Source of the DNA: Stylophora pistillata
Lineage: Eukaryota
Direction: 5' to 3'
Assembly: GCF_002571385.2 (NCBI RefSeq)
Contig: NW_019218030.1
Span: 228,927 to 292,926 of the forward strand
Length of the DNA: 64,000 bases
The notes beneath the pieces are model-generated. The model saw nothing but the letters and a program-made list of their open reading frames with translations, was not told the DNA's origin and did no database searches. The translations under genes were made by a program, and so were the position numbers. Shown piece after piece: positions 48,300 through 64,000 of this stretch. Numbering within the stretch: position 1 is the first letter of the stretch; each line of letters opens with the position of its first letter.

Positions 48300-51200
48300 T
48301 CATGTGGCGTATCGTCGGGTCCATTCCCTCGCTATTCTGTCGTGTTCCTCGCGGTTAGAAATGTATTGAGCCGCAATGTTTCCCACTAACGGATCCGCTG
48401 AAAACATAACAGTTATACAAAAAAGAAGAAAGTGAAATAAAGAAAAACGTATCTTCGTCTTGTCAAGAGCGTAAGAAAAAGAAAAAGTTCTGCTTCGCGA
48501 GAGAGACACCTTCAATTTCCGCGCTCAGATAGTGTCAGTACCATCACATTTTCATCATATCGTTGCCCCCGCGTTCACACCAAAAACACAACCACATAAT
48601 GACCTTTCTATGCCGTTTTTCTTAAGTCGATTTATCGTAATTTGACTTGACACTCGACACAACTAACAAATCGATCGGAATGACATCTCTATCGACGCTA
48701 ATCAAGTCTCGCAGCCGATGAGAACACGACAAGATAGACCAATTAGTTTTGTAGCCTCTAAACATTTCCTTCAGACTAAAGCAGTTGAGAGAATTTTGAG
48801 TTACATCACTTGATCGACTTGTTCAGTTTGCAACACGGAGGGTGATAGTTCACGGTGCGAGATAGGATGAGATCGAGAGGAGCGAAAAAACGAGGGAGGC
48901 TGGGCCAGGTCAGGTTGGGTAAAGAACGAGACTCGACCCAGACCTCCATTCGCCGCTAGTAGAACACCGTTTACGTCGAACAGGCTAGGTGTTACATTAA
49001 TATGACATACTCTAGATGATAAGTTTCTACATTTTTGTCACGTGTTTGATAAATATTATACCAAAATTCACTACCTAACTAGGGAATTTCGCATTCAATT
49101 GTATAAGTGCGAAGTCGGTTTTTCCTTGAGTCGCATAATTGAATAAAAGTTAAAAAAGAAAAAAAAAAAAGGAAAAAAGAAAGCAGTAATGAGCGATGCA
49201 AGAGATGCAATTCAACTCACAACGCTACGCTAAATACTTCGCCTCTTTAGCCAATCAGAATGTGAGATTTTATTCAATCACACATTTTATAAAAACTATT
49301 GAGAGATTTTACAAGCTAATCAAGTCTCGGAATTGAAACCACATTACCTGGATTGCAGTCTGTCAAAAGGGAGCAGACAGAAAGAAGAACTTTGGAAATG
49401 GTCAGAGCTGGGCTCCAGTTATCTTTTAAAATATCTAGACAAATCACTCCCTAAAAAAAAAAAAACAACTTATCGTGTTAACTCTCCACACCCTATACTA
49501 ACATCAGTGTATATATTCTCCATACTGTTCTCTATACATTTAATAAGGTGCTGACAAGGAGAAATTGTTTAACAATCAATAGCTTCTTTAGTCGTTGATC
49601 ATTTCCTTTAGTCTCCTGACCTTAATGTGTGGTTCAGGGTGATATTGTAAGGAGAAATTAGATGCTAGTCACTTTTAGGAGTCAAAAGTGTGGAATGACG
49701 TTCAGAACCCCGAGGCAATAAAATAGTTATCTATCAAATGGACAAGAAGAAAAGATCAGTATCTATAGTATGTATGTATGTATGTAGGTAGATAGGTAGG
49801 TAAGTAGGTAGGTATGTATGTATGTATGTATGTATGTATGTATTTACGATATTTAGACAAGCCAACCCAGTTCAGCTTGAAGCTGGTTTAAATGGGGGCT
49901 TGTACATCCCACCATCCCACCCCAGGGGAGGACATCCATAACACGGTAATCTGCTGTTCATTTGCATTTGAGTGACTGTTGATGTACTTATCAGACATTA
50001 GCATAGTATCTTCGATACTGGGATGGCGCTCGCTAATAGGTTAGACGCCGACGCTTAAGCAAGTCCCGGTGGGGTACCCTAGTTTAGTCCCTTCTTAGCC
50101 TTAGACAGATGTCGTTGTTACTCCAACTCAGAGTTGAATTCAATTTTCCGGAAATTTGGCGATGAACACACAGATAATACAAGAACAAAAAAAAGCTGTC
50201 CGTATATTGTCTTGATTCTGACATCTTCTTTCTAAAGTAAATAACTAAGTTATCTCAGATGACTTTGACGCGATCAACTGTGTTTGCGCATTTCAAACTG
50301 ATTGGCATAATATCACGTTTTCTCATTCCTTGCTTTTGTTTTCTTTTCTTAGAGCAAATTAAAGTAACTTATTTTCTATTCTCTGTTACAATGTTTCCAA
50401 ATGTCTCTCTTATTGATCAGGAATGGTTGGATATTTCCGATCAAGACCAAGGCTCTCGAGAAAAAAAAAATAGAAAACTGTAATACACGAAAAATAAACA
50501 AGAACCCTTCGACATTCTACACAGTGGGTTCACAAAGTCTGTGCATATATTTAGTCTAGATGTCCTAATTATACACTGATGTAATATTTCACTTTGGTAT
50601 CCTTAGAAAAATACAACTGCCAAGATCTGCTCGTAAATTTTTGCCATGTTTGACTATACAGCCATTTTATTGTAAAAGGCTCATTCATTCCTTATTTCCC
50701 TGTTCCGCCCAGTCACTATCTGACTATAAATGTATATATTCGTATGTCGCATGAAGCAGTTAAAAAAATGTTAAAACGTTGAACTGAAACAATACCAGCT
50801 TTTGTAACCATCAATCTCTGCAGGAGTCAGATCACATTGTAGGTTGTATACAAACATAAATTCAGGTTTCTTGAGCAGGAGATGGAATTAAGCTAGTTTT
50901 GCGAGTTTTTTCTTTTCAAAGGGAGGCATTATGCTTTAATAATTGAACCTGTTCGAAATTCGTTTGTAAGCCGAAATGCAAAAATCAAATTTTAAAAAAA
51001 GTTCTCACCTGGCTATTGACATTACAATGATAAATTCTTGTTCGAAAAGTTACCTTCGGAGAAAAAAATAGAAAGTGTACATTGCATAAATAATCAAACT
51101 TTTGACATATTGTTAACTCTGTTATTTTTGTAACGCCACAAATTTTTACCTGTTATGAACTATTTGACACCATTTCGTGAACCTCGCACGGTCTAAATAT

Positions 51201-62000: not shown

Positions 62001-64000
62001 TTTGTTTGCCAAATCAGAATCGCGAAGATAGATTTTATCAAAACATATAAAAATAGACAATGCTTGTCTTCTCTGATCTAAAATAGTCAACATGATAAGG
62101 CCTTATTCCTTGCCTTCTTTCGCGCCCGTTTCACGAGGGATCAACATTTTATTTACTCGACAATCTATTTATTTGATTCCCAATTCGAAGTTTTAATCGA
62201 TGGGTAACTGTATTGCCATAGTAACACTGCTTCCTTTCGTGCAGGCAGGATTCACCTTTTGGTAAATTAAAGGAAACTGTATTGTTAGCTCAGAGCCACC
62301 TTAACATATCCCAAAATTAAGGGAAATAAATTAAAGAAACACTTCCAAGTGTTAAACTCTCTTCATACATACATTCTTCATTGAAGGCGTCATTTTCATT
62401 CATTAAAATTTTTAACACTGTCAGTGACCGAAGACAATTAAAAGGGGGCACTTCAAAGCGACTCGGGACGTCCTGTCTATTGTGCAGGCTGCTGTAGCTT
62501 CTGTTTCATGTTACGAAACAGCTATGCAGTACTTCTGGTATTCCATGAAATTTTCGTGTATACTTCACTTTTTTGCAGCGCTGGCCCGAAGGGAGACAAT
62601 CTGTACGAGTGGAACTCGACAATACTCGGCCCACCTGGATCAGTATACGAGGGAGGAGTTTTCTTTCTCGACATTCATTTTCCTTCGGATTATCCTTTCA
62701 AGCCACCAAAAGTAAGAATTCATATGGATAGAGCTCTTTTCGACTGAGTATCGTAAAACCAAAACCAAAGAAATCACAACGGCCAATCAGATGACAGGAA
62801 TATACTTAAGGGAGCCAATGAGAACTCACAGTAAATAAGCGCGGGAAAACGCGGGTGATCAAGTCGTTACTGGCGTTAGTTTTGCATCCGATTGGTCGAG
62901 AAAGTAGTGCGAGTTTTCTGGACTAATCACAGAGTGGAGTAAGGCAAAACCATTGAAATCCCGGGCTGTTTTCGACGCTCCGTTTAACTGTGACATAACT
63001 AGAGACTGAGGATGGTGAAGTACAGTCAAACTCCCCTCCTGTTACCATAGCGTACTAATTCTCTTTATCTGCCTGTGATTCAAAGAGGAGTTTAGTGACG
63101 CCGACTAGTTATCACTAAATTGCAGTTAGCATGTCAGAAGTCATCTTTTTAACAAACTTCAAAGAAATGAACACATACGGTTAAGAGCTGACTTGGAGTT
63201 TGAAAATGATGTGGGCACCATAAACCAATCGCGCGCAAAACAAGGGTTTGATTAAAGAAGTGGTGCCTTACAAATATGGCGATTTAACGAAGCATTGTGT
63301 ATTTGATTTGTTTACAGGTTTCTTTCCGCACTAGAATATATCATTGTAATATCAACAGCCAGGTAAGTCTGGCCTTTTGCATGTTATGATTTTGTCATCA
63401 ATTGCCCATTATTGCCCTGCTGTGTAGACGTCCTATTAACCTGCGATCAAACCCTTGAGCCCGCAGAGGTCTGCAAGGGAAGTAGCAGTATTAGTGTCAG
63501 ACCTCCGGCAAACCTCTCCTCGGCTCGTATCCAATCTTCCCGCGGACGAAAAAAACGCGCGTCCTGCGGCTCTTATAACAAGGAACTTGTGAGTTGACGT
63601 GATCTTTAATAGATCATGAGAAGCATCAATATACGTACGTAATTAAACTTAACGTATAATACGAAATACATAACAACTAGTGCACCTAATCAGATTTCAG
63701 AATTTGTGATAGAGCGCTAGTAGATTTATGTTAAAAGTTGGCGATGGAAAACTTTCAGGGAACGAAATGTTTAGATGGCTGCGATCGTTCTTCTTTACGT
63801 CCTCCTTACCAAGGACTCTTTCGCGGGATGGCACAGGGAAGGCAGGAAGAAGAGAGAGCCTGGGAGCAAGATGGGTGAATAAGTGGAAAGCTGTGGTGAT
63901 CATAGGCAGTGGAGTTAACAAAACTGGACAAGAAATTTAATTTCTATTATCATTTGTCTTCATTCCAGGGTGTGATTTGTTTGGATATTCTTAAAGACAG
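59012..64000 (+). CDS. UBE2E: Ubiquitin-conjugating enzyme E2 E (UBE2E class), paralog B, runs off the window end
   Basis: Exons 59012-59175, 59535-59585, 62579-62711, 63318-63362 and 63969->64000. Exon sizes (51, 133, 45) and phases match paralog A. Protein: MSEHTALSS...[92 protein letters not shown]... Confidence 0.95.
62729..62985. mobile_element. Degenerate MITE in intron 3 of UBE2E paralog B
   Basis: GAGTATCGTAAAAC...GCCAATCA / GATTGG...GTTTTCGACGCTC inverted architecture. Confidence 0.5.

Follow-up and report, generated by a model that had tools for sequence, protein, structure and literature searches.

In vertebrates, McEwen et al. reportedly described in 2006 duplicated conserved non-coding elements (dCNEs) located next to paralogous genes. 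Within the Anthozoa, 143 ultra-conserved non-coding elements (UCNEs) are recorded from sea anemones belonging to the Edwardsiidae (cited in PMC12053456 from Zimmermann et al. 2023); the term "UBE2" was not found in the main text of PMC12053456, the UCNE list itself being in an external database or supplement. In this work a window of 64,000 nt from the stony coral Stylophora pistillata was analysed, in which two genes of UBE2E type point away from each other, head to head: gene A lies on the minus strand and gene B on the plus strand. The short blocks common to both genes are non-coding and non-repeat, are conserved among orthologues above neutral expectation, and stand in the same order and orientation at both paralogues, as dCNEs do. 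We propose that they are duplicated conserved non-coding elements under purifying selection.

The ATG-to-ATG interval of the pair is 4,381 nt, in agreement with the head-to-head arrangement and the interval of about 4.4 kb given in the initial annotation. The gene models are as follows.

48300..55192, minus strand: gene A (UBE2E-type E2), from exon borders, phases, RNA joints, Pfam and solved-structure matches.
About 55192-55015, minus strand: 5'UTR exon of gene A, alternative donor at 55001.
54631-54486 (ATG at 54631), 53983-53933 and 51773-51641, minus strand: exons e2, e3 and e4 of gene A.
51053-51009, 49450-49348 and 48397-48300 (stop at 48300), minus strand: exons e5, e6 and e7 of gene A.
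58226..64000, plus strand, extending past the window end: gene B (UBE2E-type E2), from exon borders, phases and RNA joints.
From 58226 or further upstream to 58367, plus strand: 5'UTR exon of gene B, alternative donor at 58387.
58949-59175 (ATG at 59012), 59535-59585 and 62579-62711, plus strand: exons e2, e3 and e4 of gene B.
63318-63362 and from 63969, plus strand: exons e5 and e6 of gene B; e6 ends 71 nt past the window and the whole of e7 lies 817-914 nt past it, in the adjoining contig stretch L002.

In both genes, exons e3 to e7 measure 51, 133, 45, 103 and 98 nt; their phases are the same in A and B, and their borders are GT..AG. The earlier statement that all exon sizes and phases are identical thus stands for these five sizes and for every phase, including that of the ATG exons; it fails for the coding size of the ATG exons, which is 146 nt in A versus 164 nt in B. 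A third paralogue, gene C, with the same exon structure, is located 88 kb away. An N-terminal extension is present in all three genes (the ATG exon codes for 48 aa in A, 54 aa in B and 47 aa in C); no Pfam family was found in these ATG-exon peptides, and the extensions of A and B can be aligned at their last residues only, in line with the earlier remark that they do not align. Pfam searches were carried out exon by exon rather than with a joined protein, and the UBC fold (UQ_con, PF00179) was detected in the e4 peptides (E = 3.7e-14 for A, 2e-14 for B) and in the e6 peptide of A (E = 1.7e-10). When the e7 peptide was compared with PDB sequences, the best ten were all UBE2E1/2/3 (E = 3e-12 to 1.7e-11), UBE2D entries following from 5e-6, and the best ten for the e4 peptide were likewise UBE2E. 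Across e5/e6 the peptides of A, B and C read ...YHCN(V/I)NSQ-GVICLDIL..., which we take to be the active-site (catalytic cysteine) context of an E2. By sequence similarity the genes are assigned to UBE2E (class III E2 with N-terminal extension), nearer to UBE2E1-3 than to UBE2D. Synonymous sites between A and B are saturated (pS 0.753; 29/52 four-fold sites differ), which bears out the many synonymous differences claimed before.

Both genes are expressed at similar depth and are spliced as modelled in two raw-read RNA runs. In run X24 the joints of gene A are 54631 to 55015 (21 reads), 54631 to 55001 (8 reads) and 53983 to 54486 (34 reads), and those of gene B are 58365 to 58947 (17 reads, cut +2), 58387 to 58949 (12 reads) and 59173 to 59533 (16 reads, cut +2); loose read ends at 53933 in A and at 59585 in B continue into e4. 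The introns in which the shared blocks lie are thereby supported at the RNA level.

At least five recurring non-coding blocks had been claimed for the pair. When 94 tiles, each of 200 nt, were compared with the 9.6-kb partner region, no more than three distinct matches reached a score of at least 18, all collinear, in gene-relative orientation and in the homologous compartment; the best opposite-orientation score was 17. The local-alignment scores of the three compartments were reached by 0, 4 and 0 of 300 dinucleotide shuffles and in 0-3 of 300 random genomic segments (2 x 300). The comparison of the two halves against a shuffled null therefore upholds three of the claimed blocks, namely the promoter block, the intron 18-mer and a block in the next intron. 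These three, a weak fourth block and a single-copy island are located as follows.

55158..55217, minus strand: block 1 copy A, TAAATTAG ... TGAC(A/G)TCG ... TTGACAGGCGGA.
58139..58202, plus strand: block 1 copy B, TAAATTAG ... TGACGTC ... TGACAGGCGGAGAC.
54280..54299, minus strand: block 2 copy A, exact 18-mer TAATTTGCATGTTAACTT at 54298-54281, 187 nt past the e2 donor.
59266..59288, plus strand: block 2 copy B, 18-mer TAATTTGCATGTTAACTT at 59270-59287, 94 nt past the e2 donor.
53858..53913, minus strand: block 3 copy A, 20-75 nt into the e3-e4 intron, core CTTGTTTGGAAAACAATGG.TTGCGGTTTTTGTTTC.
59619..59685, plus strand: block 3 copy B, 34-100 nt into the e3-e4 intron.
53633..53685, minus strand: block 4 (weak) copy A, about 250-300 nt into the e3-e4 intron, conserved in A orthologues.
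59872..59922, plus strand: block 4 (weak) copy B, eroded.
56980..57275, no strand: conserved non-coding island, single-copy, within the intergenic region common to both genes.

The bulk intron sequence, including the rest of the large e3-e4 intron outside the block, is at chance level, as the initial annotation had it: in this intron (2.2/3.0 kb), exact matches of at least 10 nt number 10 in gene orientation versus 18 in the opposite one. Two other claimed blocks were not confirmed. The 11-mer TTTCACTGTGA at the 5'UTR donor spans the donor in A, is exonic in B and lacks conservation in the orthologues of both genes, and it is a chance or lineage-specific match; the 10-mer ATCAGATCTG likewise showed no conservation in orthologues of A or B. 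Both behave like chance matches, and the likeness of about 185 nt that links intron 5 of A to intron 6 of B comes from a high-copy interspersed element (3,273 first-look candidates). These observations would favor the reading of all the blocks as chance matches or pieces of dispersed repeats, as would the fact that 33/58 exact 18-mer matches in metagenomes fall at unrelated loci. For blocks 1-3 this reading is refuted by the shuffle and genomic nulls, by uniqueness in the genome and by recurrence at orthologous places in other taxa, and overall we regard it as extremely improbable.

Orthologous loci were found by scanning metagenome contigs with the 18-mer of block 2, which yielded UBE2E loci in six further coral taxa and in a single taxon of more distant kinship (L013); 20 of the 53 metagenome loci with the 18-mer are UBE2E loci. 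Finding loci by an exact 18-mer biases the sample toward conservation of block 2; blocks 1 and 3 played no part in it, so their conservation is an unbiased test. Both paralogues are found in the window species, in group 1 (sp1-sp5) and in sp6. Since sp1-sp5 are close relatives (identity 82-93%), the independent lineages number three, with L013 added for block 2 only. The two genes lie head to head on four contigs (L022, L033, L035 and L054), with 5,045-5,097 nt between the two 18-mers in three of the four versus 4,989 nt in the window. In the 7-taxon alignments of A and of B orthologues, blocks 1-3 are among the longest invariant non-coding runs (14-22 nt); the search for the pair and its blocks in other corals thus had a positive outcome. 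Such runs persist despite orthologous synonymous sites near saturation (pS 0.63 for A, 0.69 for B), as expected from the proposed selection on shared blocks. Distal introns of orthologues give no alignment at E<=1e-10, and the 5' non-coding compartments are 53-78% identical versus a baseline of 42-45% for unrelated sequence. When the paralogues were scanned against each other within the four other-species contigs, the same three blocks were recovered with scores of 19-28, except that block 1 in L022 scores <18. In L013 blocks 1 and 3 are absent, and the 18-20-nt core of block 2 is unchanged and itself duplicated. Because the same stretches are nearly unchanged in other corals, they appear to be very old control elements rather than chance likenesses.

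Block 1 (about 60 nt), a putative promoter/TSS module, scores 18, a value reached by 0/300 shuffles and 0/600 random genomic segments. In the alignment, TAAATTAG stands 49 nt (A) and 50 nt (B) ahead of the TGACAGG motif. Copy A contains invariant runs across seven A orthologues, TGACAGGCGGAGAC is a 14-nt invariant run in seven B orthologues, and the CRE-like-plus-TGACAGGCGGA pattern occurs genome-wide only at the two copies. A 12-mer of the module lies inside a transcript contig in A, and in B it precedes the 5'-most contig end by 27 nt. Since the promoter module is present separately at either gene, A and B do not share one promoter. A bidirectional promoter was rejected: the transcribed first exons reach to about 55192 (A) and 58226 (B), and raw-read depth is zero between them from 55179 to 58133. 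The intergenic island has a mean column identity of 85% (6 taxa, 3 lineages), shows no raw-read RNA depth and is without a counterpart in the half of the other gene. The position of block 1 at the promoter/TSS and the conservation of this island in untranscribed DNA point to constraint at the DNA level at this locus.

Block 2 has exactly two exact copies of TAATTTGCATGTTAACTT in the 398-Mb genome, those of A and B (reversed-pattern control, 0); of eight one-mismatch matches, five are members of a single repeat family (about 300 nt) whose flanks are unrelated. Located 247-297 nt upstream of exon 3, it lies within a 20-nt invariant run in seven A orthologues, and in seven B orthologues it forms invariant runs of 14 and 8 nt split by a single G>T in sp4. 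Block 3 (about 55 nt) scores 21, again reached by 0/300 shuffles and 0/600 genomic segments; its pattern is found genome-wide only at the two genes, its invariant runs of 22 nt and 16 nt rank first and third by length in the A orthologue alignment, and 35 columns are invariant in 14/14 sequences when seven taxa and both paralogues are aligned (alignment A2).

Blocks 2 and 3 flank exon 3 within transcribed introns, and the 51-nt length of exon 3 means that its skipping would keep the reading frame; by position, an RNA-level role is equally fitting. Blocks 2, 3 and perhaps 4 would then act in the pre-mRNA as intronic splicing enhancers or silencers for exon 3, leaving only block 1 and the intergenic islands as transcriptional elements. 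In favor of such a role, block 3 begins about 20-50 nt past the exon 3 donor, a distance that varies little among the taxa, single transcription factor sites do not usually need invariance over as much as 20-40 nt, and block 2 holds TGCATG, which we take to be an RBFOX-type motif, while the GU/U-rich block 3 is presumably of a splicing-factor motif type. Skipping of exon 3, however, was not seen: in X24 the 34 reads at the e2-e3 joint are balanced by 32 loose ends from e3 into e4, and no e2-to-e4 loose end is listed for A or B. None of the blocks was found in gene C, which splices the same 51-nt exon, so a UBE2E gene as such can do without them. Block 2 lies twice as far from the e2 donor in A as in B (187 versus 94 nt). 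The block 3 hairpin is weak (RNAalifold on 14 sequences, 8 pairs, -3.24 kcal/mol), and 0 of its pairs show changes on both sides, contrary to a covariation claim made in a separate note, and no Rfam match was found in 46000-64000 at E<=1. We consider a splicing function rather unlikely, though it deserves serious weight.

Beyond block 3, the "several" shared blocks claimed for the same intron reduce to block 4, whose A-versus-B alignment is significant in group 1 only (scores 16-20, <=1/200 shuffles), the window species and sp6 each scoring 13 (15/200 and 11/200 shuffles, respectively). Relative to other corals, copy B of the window species carries a 10-nt deletion.

The blocks could also be gene-conversion patches between neighboring inverted paralogues, since genes inverted and 4.4 kb apart have a geometry that permits conversion; in sp2 the paralogue exons are somewhat more alike (348/420 nt, pS 0.60) than in the window species (325/420, pS 0.75). 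The blocks, however, are 18-60 nt long and bounded by unalignable sequence, and exon 3, with block 2 on one side and block 3 on the other, is identical at 37/51 nt only. Differences between A and B inside blocks 2 and 3 are common to all sampled coral species, such as the 4-nt insertion in B between the halves of the block 3 inverted repeat and the states around the 18-mer (G versus C before it, TG versus C after it), so the copies have evolved separately since before the lineages split and their similarity does not stem from recent conversion. Conversion would also leave the invariance among orthologues unexplained. This reading is largely refuted, and we judge it very unlikely. The shared differences, together with the presence of both copies in the window species, group 1 and sp6, sustain the initial proposal of an old inverted duplication.

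With somewhat better than even confidence we favor the view that the shared blocks of this old inverted duplication were kept as DNA-level transcriptional modules; judged from sequence, transcriptional control is their most likely function. An ancestral UBE2E gene was duplicated in inverted orientation, with its promoter and first introns, before the sampled coral lineages split. Neutral sequence, including synonymous sites, was then randomized, and purifying selection kept a few cis-elements in both copies: the promoter/TSS module of about 60 nt, an 18-26-nt element in the intron ahead of exon 3, an element of about 55 nt just within the next intron and, in some lineages, a fourth element about 250-350 nt into the latter. 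The modules may be a core promoter plus intronic enhancers at which the same factors bind both paralogues, within a compact conserved regulatory domain of about 6.5 kb that also includes single-copy intergenic islands and that would account for the preserved head-to-head arrangement and spacing. The analysis establishes the duplication and how old it is, the blocks with their conservation and uniqueness, and that both genes are expressed; we infer that the constraint is on DNA binding rather than on RNA, and likewise which factors would bind. The block motifs presumably resemble CRE/ATF, TALE TGACAG, POU octamer ATTTGCAT, SOX AACAAT and homeodomain TAATTA sites; these resemblances and the dense non-coding conservation around the pair suggest a "developmental-type" circuit as a candidate. 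More tentatively, it is possible, if on the doubtful side, that 53415-59923 (about 6.5 kb) is a miniature regulatory block of stony corals, in which an E2 pair rather than a transcription factor would be the target of dense, ancient cis-regulation, with mirror-image enhancers kept since the inverted duplication, a core element common to L013, and shared or interleaved enhancers that lock the head-to-head layout, UBE2E dosage or cell-type expression being a conserved developmental variable in Anthozoa.

The locus offers a small defined set of candidate cis-elements (18-60 nt, two copies each, at least three deep lineages) that can be directly tested with reporters or minigenes. Footprinting of paralogue against paralogue works in cnidarians despite saturated synonymous sites, and a nominally housekeeping E2 pair is found in a domain dense in conserved non-coding sequence, an arrangement mostly associated with developmental regulators. 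A natural subfunctionalization series is provided by block 4, which one lineage retains and which is eroded in another, and by gene C, from which all the blocks have been lost.

Compared with known systems, the pair is like bidirectional promoter pairs in that the genes are divergent with similar read depth; unlike such pairs, whose starts lie within about 1 kb of each other, the coral genes have first exons separated by about 3 kb. Like the Edwardsiidae UCNEs, as these are presented in PMC12053456, the coral blocks display non-coding conservation within Anthozoa above neutral expectation; the UCNEs differ in being at least 100 bp long and defined in one anemone family. The blocks also resemble vertebrate dCNEs: after duplication of a gene, each of its copies retains short elements in the same relative order, these elements are conserved far above the neutral level, and one copy has lost some of them (block 4 in the coral). 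Unlike vertebrate dCNEs, the coral case involves a local inverted tandem duplication in a cnidarian instead of a whole-genome duplication, an E2 enzyme instead of a developmental transcription factor, and short elements (18-60 nt) within 1 kb of the 5' exons.

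Two genes that diverge from a common interval, gene A on the minus strand and gene B on the plus strand, encode UBE2E-type E2 enzymes with N-terminal extensions, because the Pfam family UQ_con is matched by the e4 and e6 peptides and UBE2E1/2/3 chains are the best structure matches (e2 denotes the ATG exon, e3-e7 the core coding exons).

Coding exons of the gene pair
54631-54486, 53983-53933, 51773-51641, 51053-51009, 49450-49348 and 48397-48300, minus strand, gene A
59012-59175, 59535-59585, 62579-62711, 63318-63362 and 63969 onward, plus strand, gene B

Gene B continues beyond the window: the adjoining stretch L002 contains the end of its exon 6 and its last exon. 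All exon borders in both genes are GT..AG. The ATG exon carries 146 coding nt in A and 164 in B (extensions of 48 and 54 residues, respectively), followed by exons of 51, 133, 45, 103 and 98 nt with identical phases. The ATG-to-ATG distance is 4,381 nt. The head-to-head UBE2E pair and ~4.4 kb interval described in the initial annotation hold, as do the matching exons for the e3-e7 sizes and for all phases. Protein searches were run on single exon peptides rather than on a spliced model, and split codons were left out of codon counts. The closest solved structures to both the e4 and e7 peptides were UBE2E1/2/3 chains (for e7, E = 3e-12 to 1.7e-11, versus 5e-6 for UBE2D). The 48-aa e2 peptide of A, used in a protein word search, gave no candidate among proteins of 26-84 aa, a size range that is silent on full-length relatives; the same peptide matched 593 pattern stretches in metagenome contigs, none of which was confirmed by tblastn.

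The non-coding DNA of A and B was compared with exons masked, by blastn and by 94 overlapping 200-nt tiles of A against a 9.6-kb B region. Only three distinct matches scored at least 18; all are collinear, in gene-relative orientation and in homologous compartments, and the top score in the opposite orientation was 17 (tile scan of the window).

Non-coding blocks common to genes A and B
A 55217-55158, B 58139-58199: block 1, promoter
A 54298-54281, B 59270-59287: block 2, e2-e3 intron, exact 18-mer TAATTTGCATGTTAACTT
A 53913-53858, B 59619-59679: block 3, start of the e3-e4 intron

The scores of blocks 1, 2 and 3 were reached by 0, 4 and 0 of 300 dinucleotide shuffles, and by 0-3 per 300 random genomic segments (2 x 300). 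Similarity between A and B was at chance level in intron 1 and intron 4, and the bulk of the e3-e4 intron gave no signal (10 exact matches of at least 10 nt in gene orientation versus 18 in the opposite one). In the 398-Mb assembly (5,513 contigs) the 18-mer has exactly two copies, both in these introns, with 0 for a reversed-pattern control, and degenerate patterns for blocks 1 and 3 occur only at A and B. Five of the eight one-mismatch matches to the 18-mer belong to one unrelated repeat family; a transposable element origin was rejected, as the flanks of this ~300-nt family could not be aligned with the UBE2E introns. A similarity of ~185 nt shared by intron 5 of A and intron 6 of B was also set aside, being a high-copy interspersed element in non-homologous places. 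It lies at 49495-49681 in A, with two inverted copies in B intron 6 (L002 ~254-436 and 534-719); a first look at the genome gave 3,273 candidates, and 40 that were scored are 87-92% identical.

Orthologous loci were sought by scanning metagenome contigs for the exact 18-mer, which gave 58 matches in 53 stretches. UBE2E loci account for 20 stretches (25 matches), of which 19 carry UBE2E exons and one (L042) is a fragment without exons that is identical to a stretch of L013; the flanks of the remaining 33 matches are unrelated. Contigs L019, L023, L025, L046 and L064, from the same coral-metagenome series, hold a second 18-mer locus (96-98% mutual identity, flanks quite different); none of the five has a UBE2E exon or matches any of three one-mismatch loci in the window genome. 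Pairwise identity sorts the UBE2E loci into three sets: group 1 (five close taxa, sp1-sp5, 82-93% mutual identity), the single separate taxon sp6, and the far more distant L013. Identity of 5' non-coding DNA between the window species, group 1 and sp6 is 66-76%; the 5' non-coding compartments align at 53-78% identity, with gaps being few, compared with 42-45% for unrelated sequence aligned likewise, and no alignment between taxa is obtained for introns at more than ~500 nt from exon 3. Orthologous pS between the window species and sp2 is 0.63 (A) and 0.69 (B). Both genes lie head to head on four contigs (L022, L033, L035 and L054), and in three of these the two 18-mers are 5,045-5,097 nt apart, versus 4,989 in the window; the B copy of L035 has a single-base difference. 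In L013 the homologous e2-e3 intron holds two direct copies of the 18-mer, separated by 204 nt, and blocks 1 and 3 were not found in this taxon. Its UBE2E gene has a 63-aa extension starting MSGR (positions 2703-2893, 3053, 3257 and 4018 onward in gene orientation), and its nucleotide match to the window is confined to the 18-mer element.

The conservation of blocks 1 and 3 is an unbiased test, because neither was used in finding the loci. Far from being at chance level and absent from orthologues, the same three blocks recurred when A was scanned against B in the four two-gene contigs (scores 19-28, opposite-orientation maxima 16-18), except for block 1 of L022, which a base change brings below 18. 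A whole-gene scan in sp2 gave no further homologous block and only a few matches of 18-20 at non-homologous places; high opposite-strand scores there came from physical overlap of two contigs and a repeat. When 7 taxa are aligned, the three longest invariant non-coding runs for A are two in block 3, of 22 and 16 nt, and one of 20 nt in block 2. For B the longest are 14 nt in block 1, 14 + 8 nt in block 2 and 10 nt in block 3, a length that three runs of the promoter region also reach. In other taxa the shared part of block 2 is longer, at 26 nt with one mismatch. In block 1 of both genes TGACGTC stands 3-6 nt ahead of TGACAGGCGGA, and TGACAGG follows TAAATTAG at a spacing of 49 nt in A and 50 nt in B. 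A 4-nt insertion in B block 3 and the bases flanking the 18-mer are paralogue-specific and fixed across taxa, which is evidence against recent gene conversion. At 240-360 nt into the e3-e4 intron there is a fourth block that reaches significance in group 1 alone; a 10-nt deletion has eroded its B copy in the window species. The initial annotation had counted at least five mirror-image blocks: blocks 1, 2 and 3 stand, collinear and above both the shuffle and genomic nulls, whereas the 11-mer TTTCACTGTGA said to mark the 5'UTR donor has no conservation in A or B orthologues, nor does the 10-mer ATCAGATCTG. The 11-mer spans the major donor in A (TTTCACT/GTGAGT) and is exonic in B, 6 nt ahead of the donor.

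The duplication is old, as had been proposed: A-B synonymous sites are saturated (pS 0.753, pN 0.072 over in-frame codons of e3-e7, exon by exon; 29 of 52 four-fold sites differ). The contig of A and B also holds a third UBE2E paralogue, gene C, at ~88 kb from gene A and ~40 kb upstream of the window start.

Third UBE2E paralogue
G000:C246 ~185019-189038 (L003+L012 positions 8020-12039), plus strand, gene C

Its exons (143, 51, 133, 45, 103 and 98 nt) have the phases of A and B, and all three pairs among A, B and C are equally saturated (pS 0.71-0.79). The N-terminal tail of C resembles that of A (SRPPKTLSGAAK in the comparison). None of the blocks was found in gene C, where the best scores were at most 17 and at non-homologous places. 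In group 1 the paralogues are closer (348/420 nt identical in sp2 versus 325/420 in the window species), and A and B have the same exon 4 peptide (L054 versus L058, sp2); conversion at the exon level, or a slower rate of change in this lineage, may account for this.

RNA from two raw-read runs and two RNA contig sets was mapped onto 53800-59700. Reads of data set X24 join gene A at 53983/54486 (n = 34), 54631/55015 (n = 21) and, alternatively, 54631/55001 (n = 8); gene B is joined at 58367/58949 (n = 17), alternatively 58387/58949 (n = 12), and 59175/59535 (n = 16). The 5'UTR exon of each gene therefore uses two tandem donors, 14 nt apart in A (55001/55015) and 20 nt apart in B (58367/58387). 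In B orthologues the conserved donor context is the downstream one (GAGTAC/GTGAGT). A and B are both expressed, with similar depth in the two raw-read runs, and depth is zero from 55179 to 58133. One RNA contig (X18) joins A exon 1 to 55907-55957 (55192/55907, gap 714 nt); the gap ends are GT..AG when read along the plus strand, opposite to gene A, and raw-read depth is absent there. The contig may include an upstream antisense transcript that was fused to A during assembly, or may be artefactual.

Blocks 2 and 3 lie on either side of the in-frame 51-nt exon 3, TGCATG occurs within block 2, and block 3 is GU-rich, features that would suit splicing elements acting at the RNA level. We consider that role less likely than control at the DNA level: loose read ends at 53933 (A) and 59585 (B) run on into exon 4, exon 3 skipping was not seen, with no e2-to-e4 joining reads listed in the four RNA sets over 53800-59700, which is why skipping is kept only as a rival explanation, and this exon is also spliced in gene C, which lacks the blocks. 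A block 3 hairpin with covariation was rejected (0 compensatory changes in 14 sequences; 8 pairs invariant or changed on one side; -3.24 kcal/mol), and Rfam gave 0 matches at E<=1 on the introns.

We lean, with modest confidence, towards control at the DNA level, in which the elements would act as transcriptional modules. Block 1 lies at the promoter, and of the 6.5 kb from 53415 to 59923 ~4.3 kb can be aligned across lineages. Two single-copy islands between the genes are shared by three coral lineages and free of raw RNA reads.

Conserved intergenic islands
56980-57275: ~290 nt, 85% mean column identity, 6 taxa
56333-56403: ~80% identity over 71 nt

Such a role would lean on the promoter position, on the 56980-57275 island outside raw RNA read coverage, on the cross-lineage alignment, and on motifs that resemble CRE, TALE, octamer, SOX and homeodomain sites and would be candidates for such sites. 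The larger island is rich in TAATTA- and ACAAT/ATTGTT-like motifs.

The mirror-image blocks are partly confirmed, and strengthened by the cross-species data; the sequence comparisons give good support to purifying selection on the duplicated elements, and the interpretation as an inverted duplication under selection is partly supported. The literature searched, with supplementary element lists outside its scope, held no report of non-coding conservation at cnidarian UBE2E genes. Duplicated conserved non-coding elements are known beside vertebrate paralogues, and the coral A/B blocks show the same pattern. Anthozoan ultra-conserved elements (PMC12053456) also match the coral pattern.
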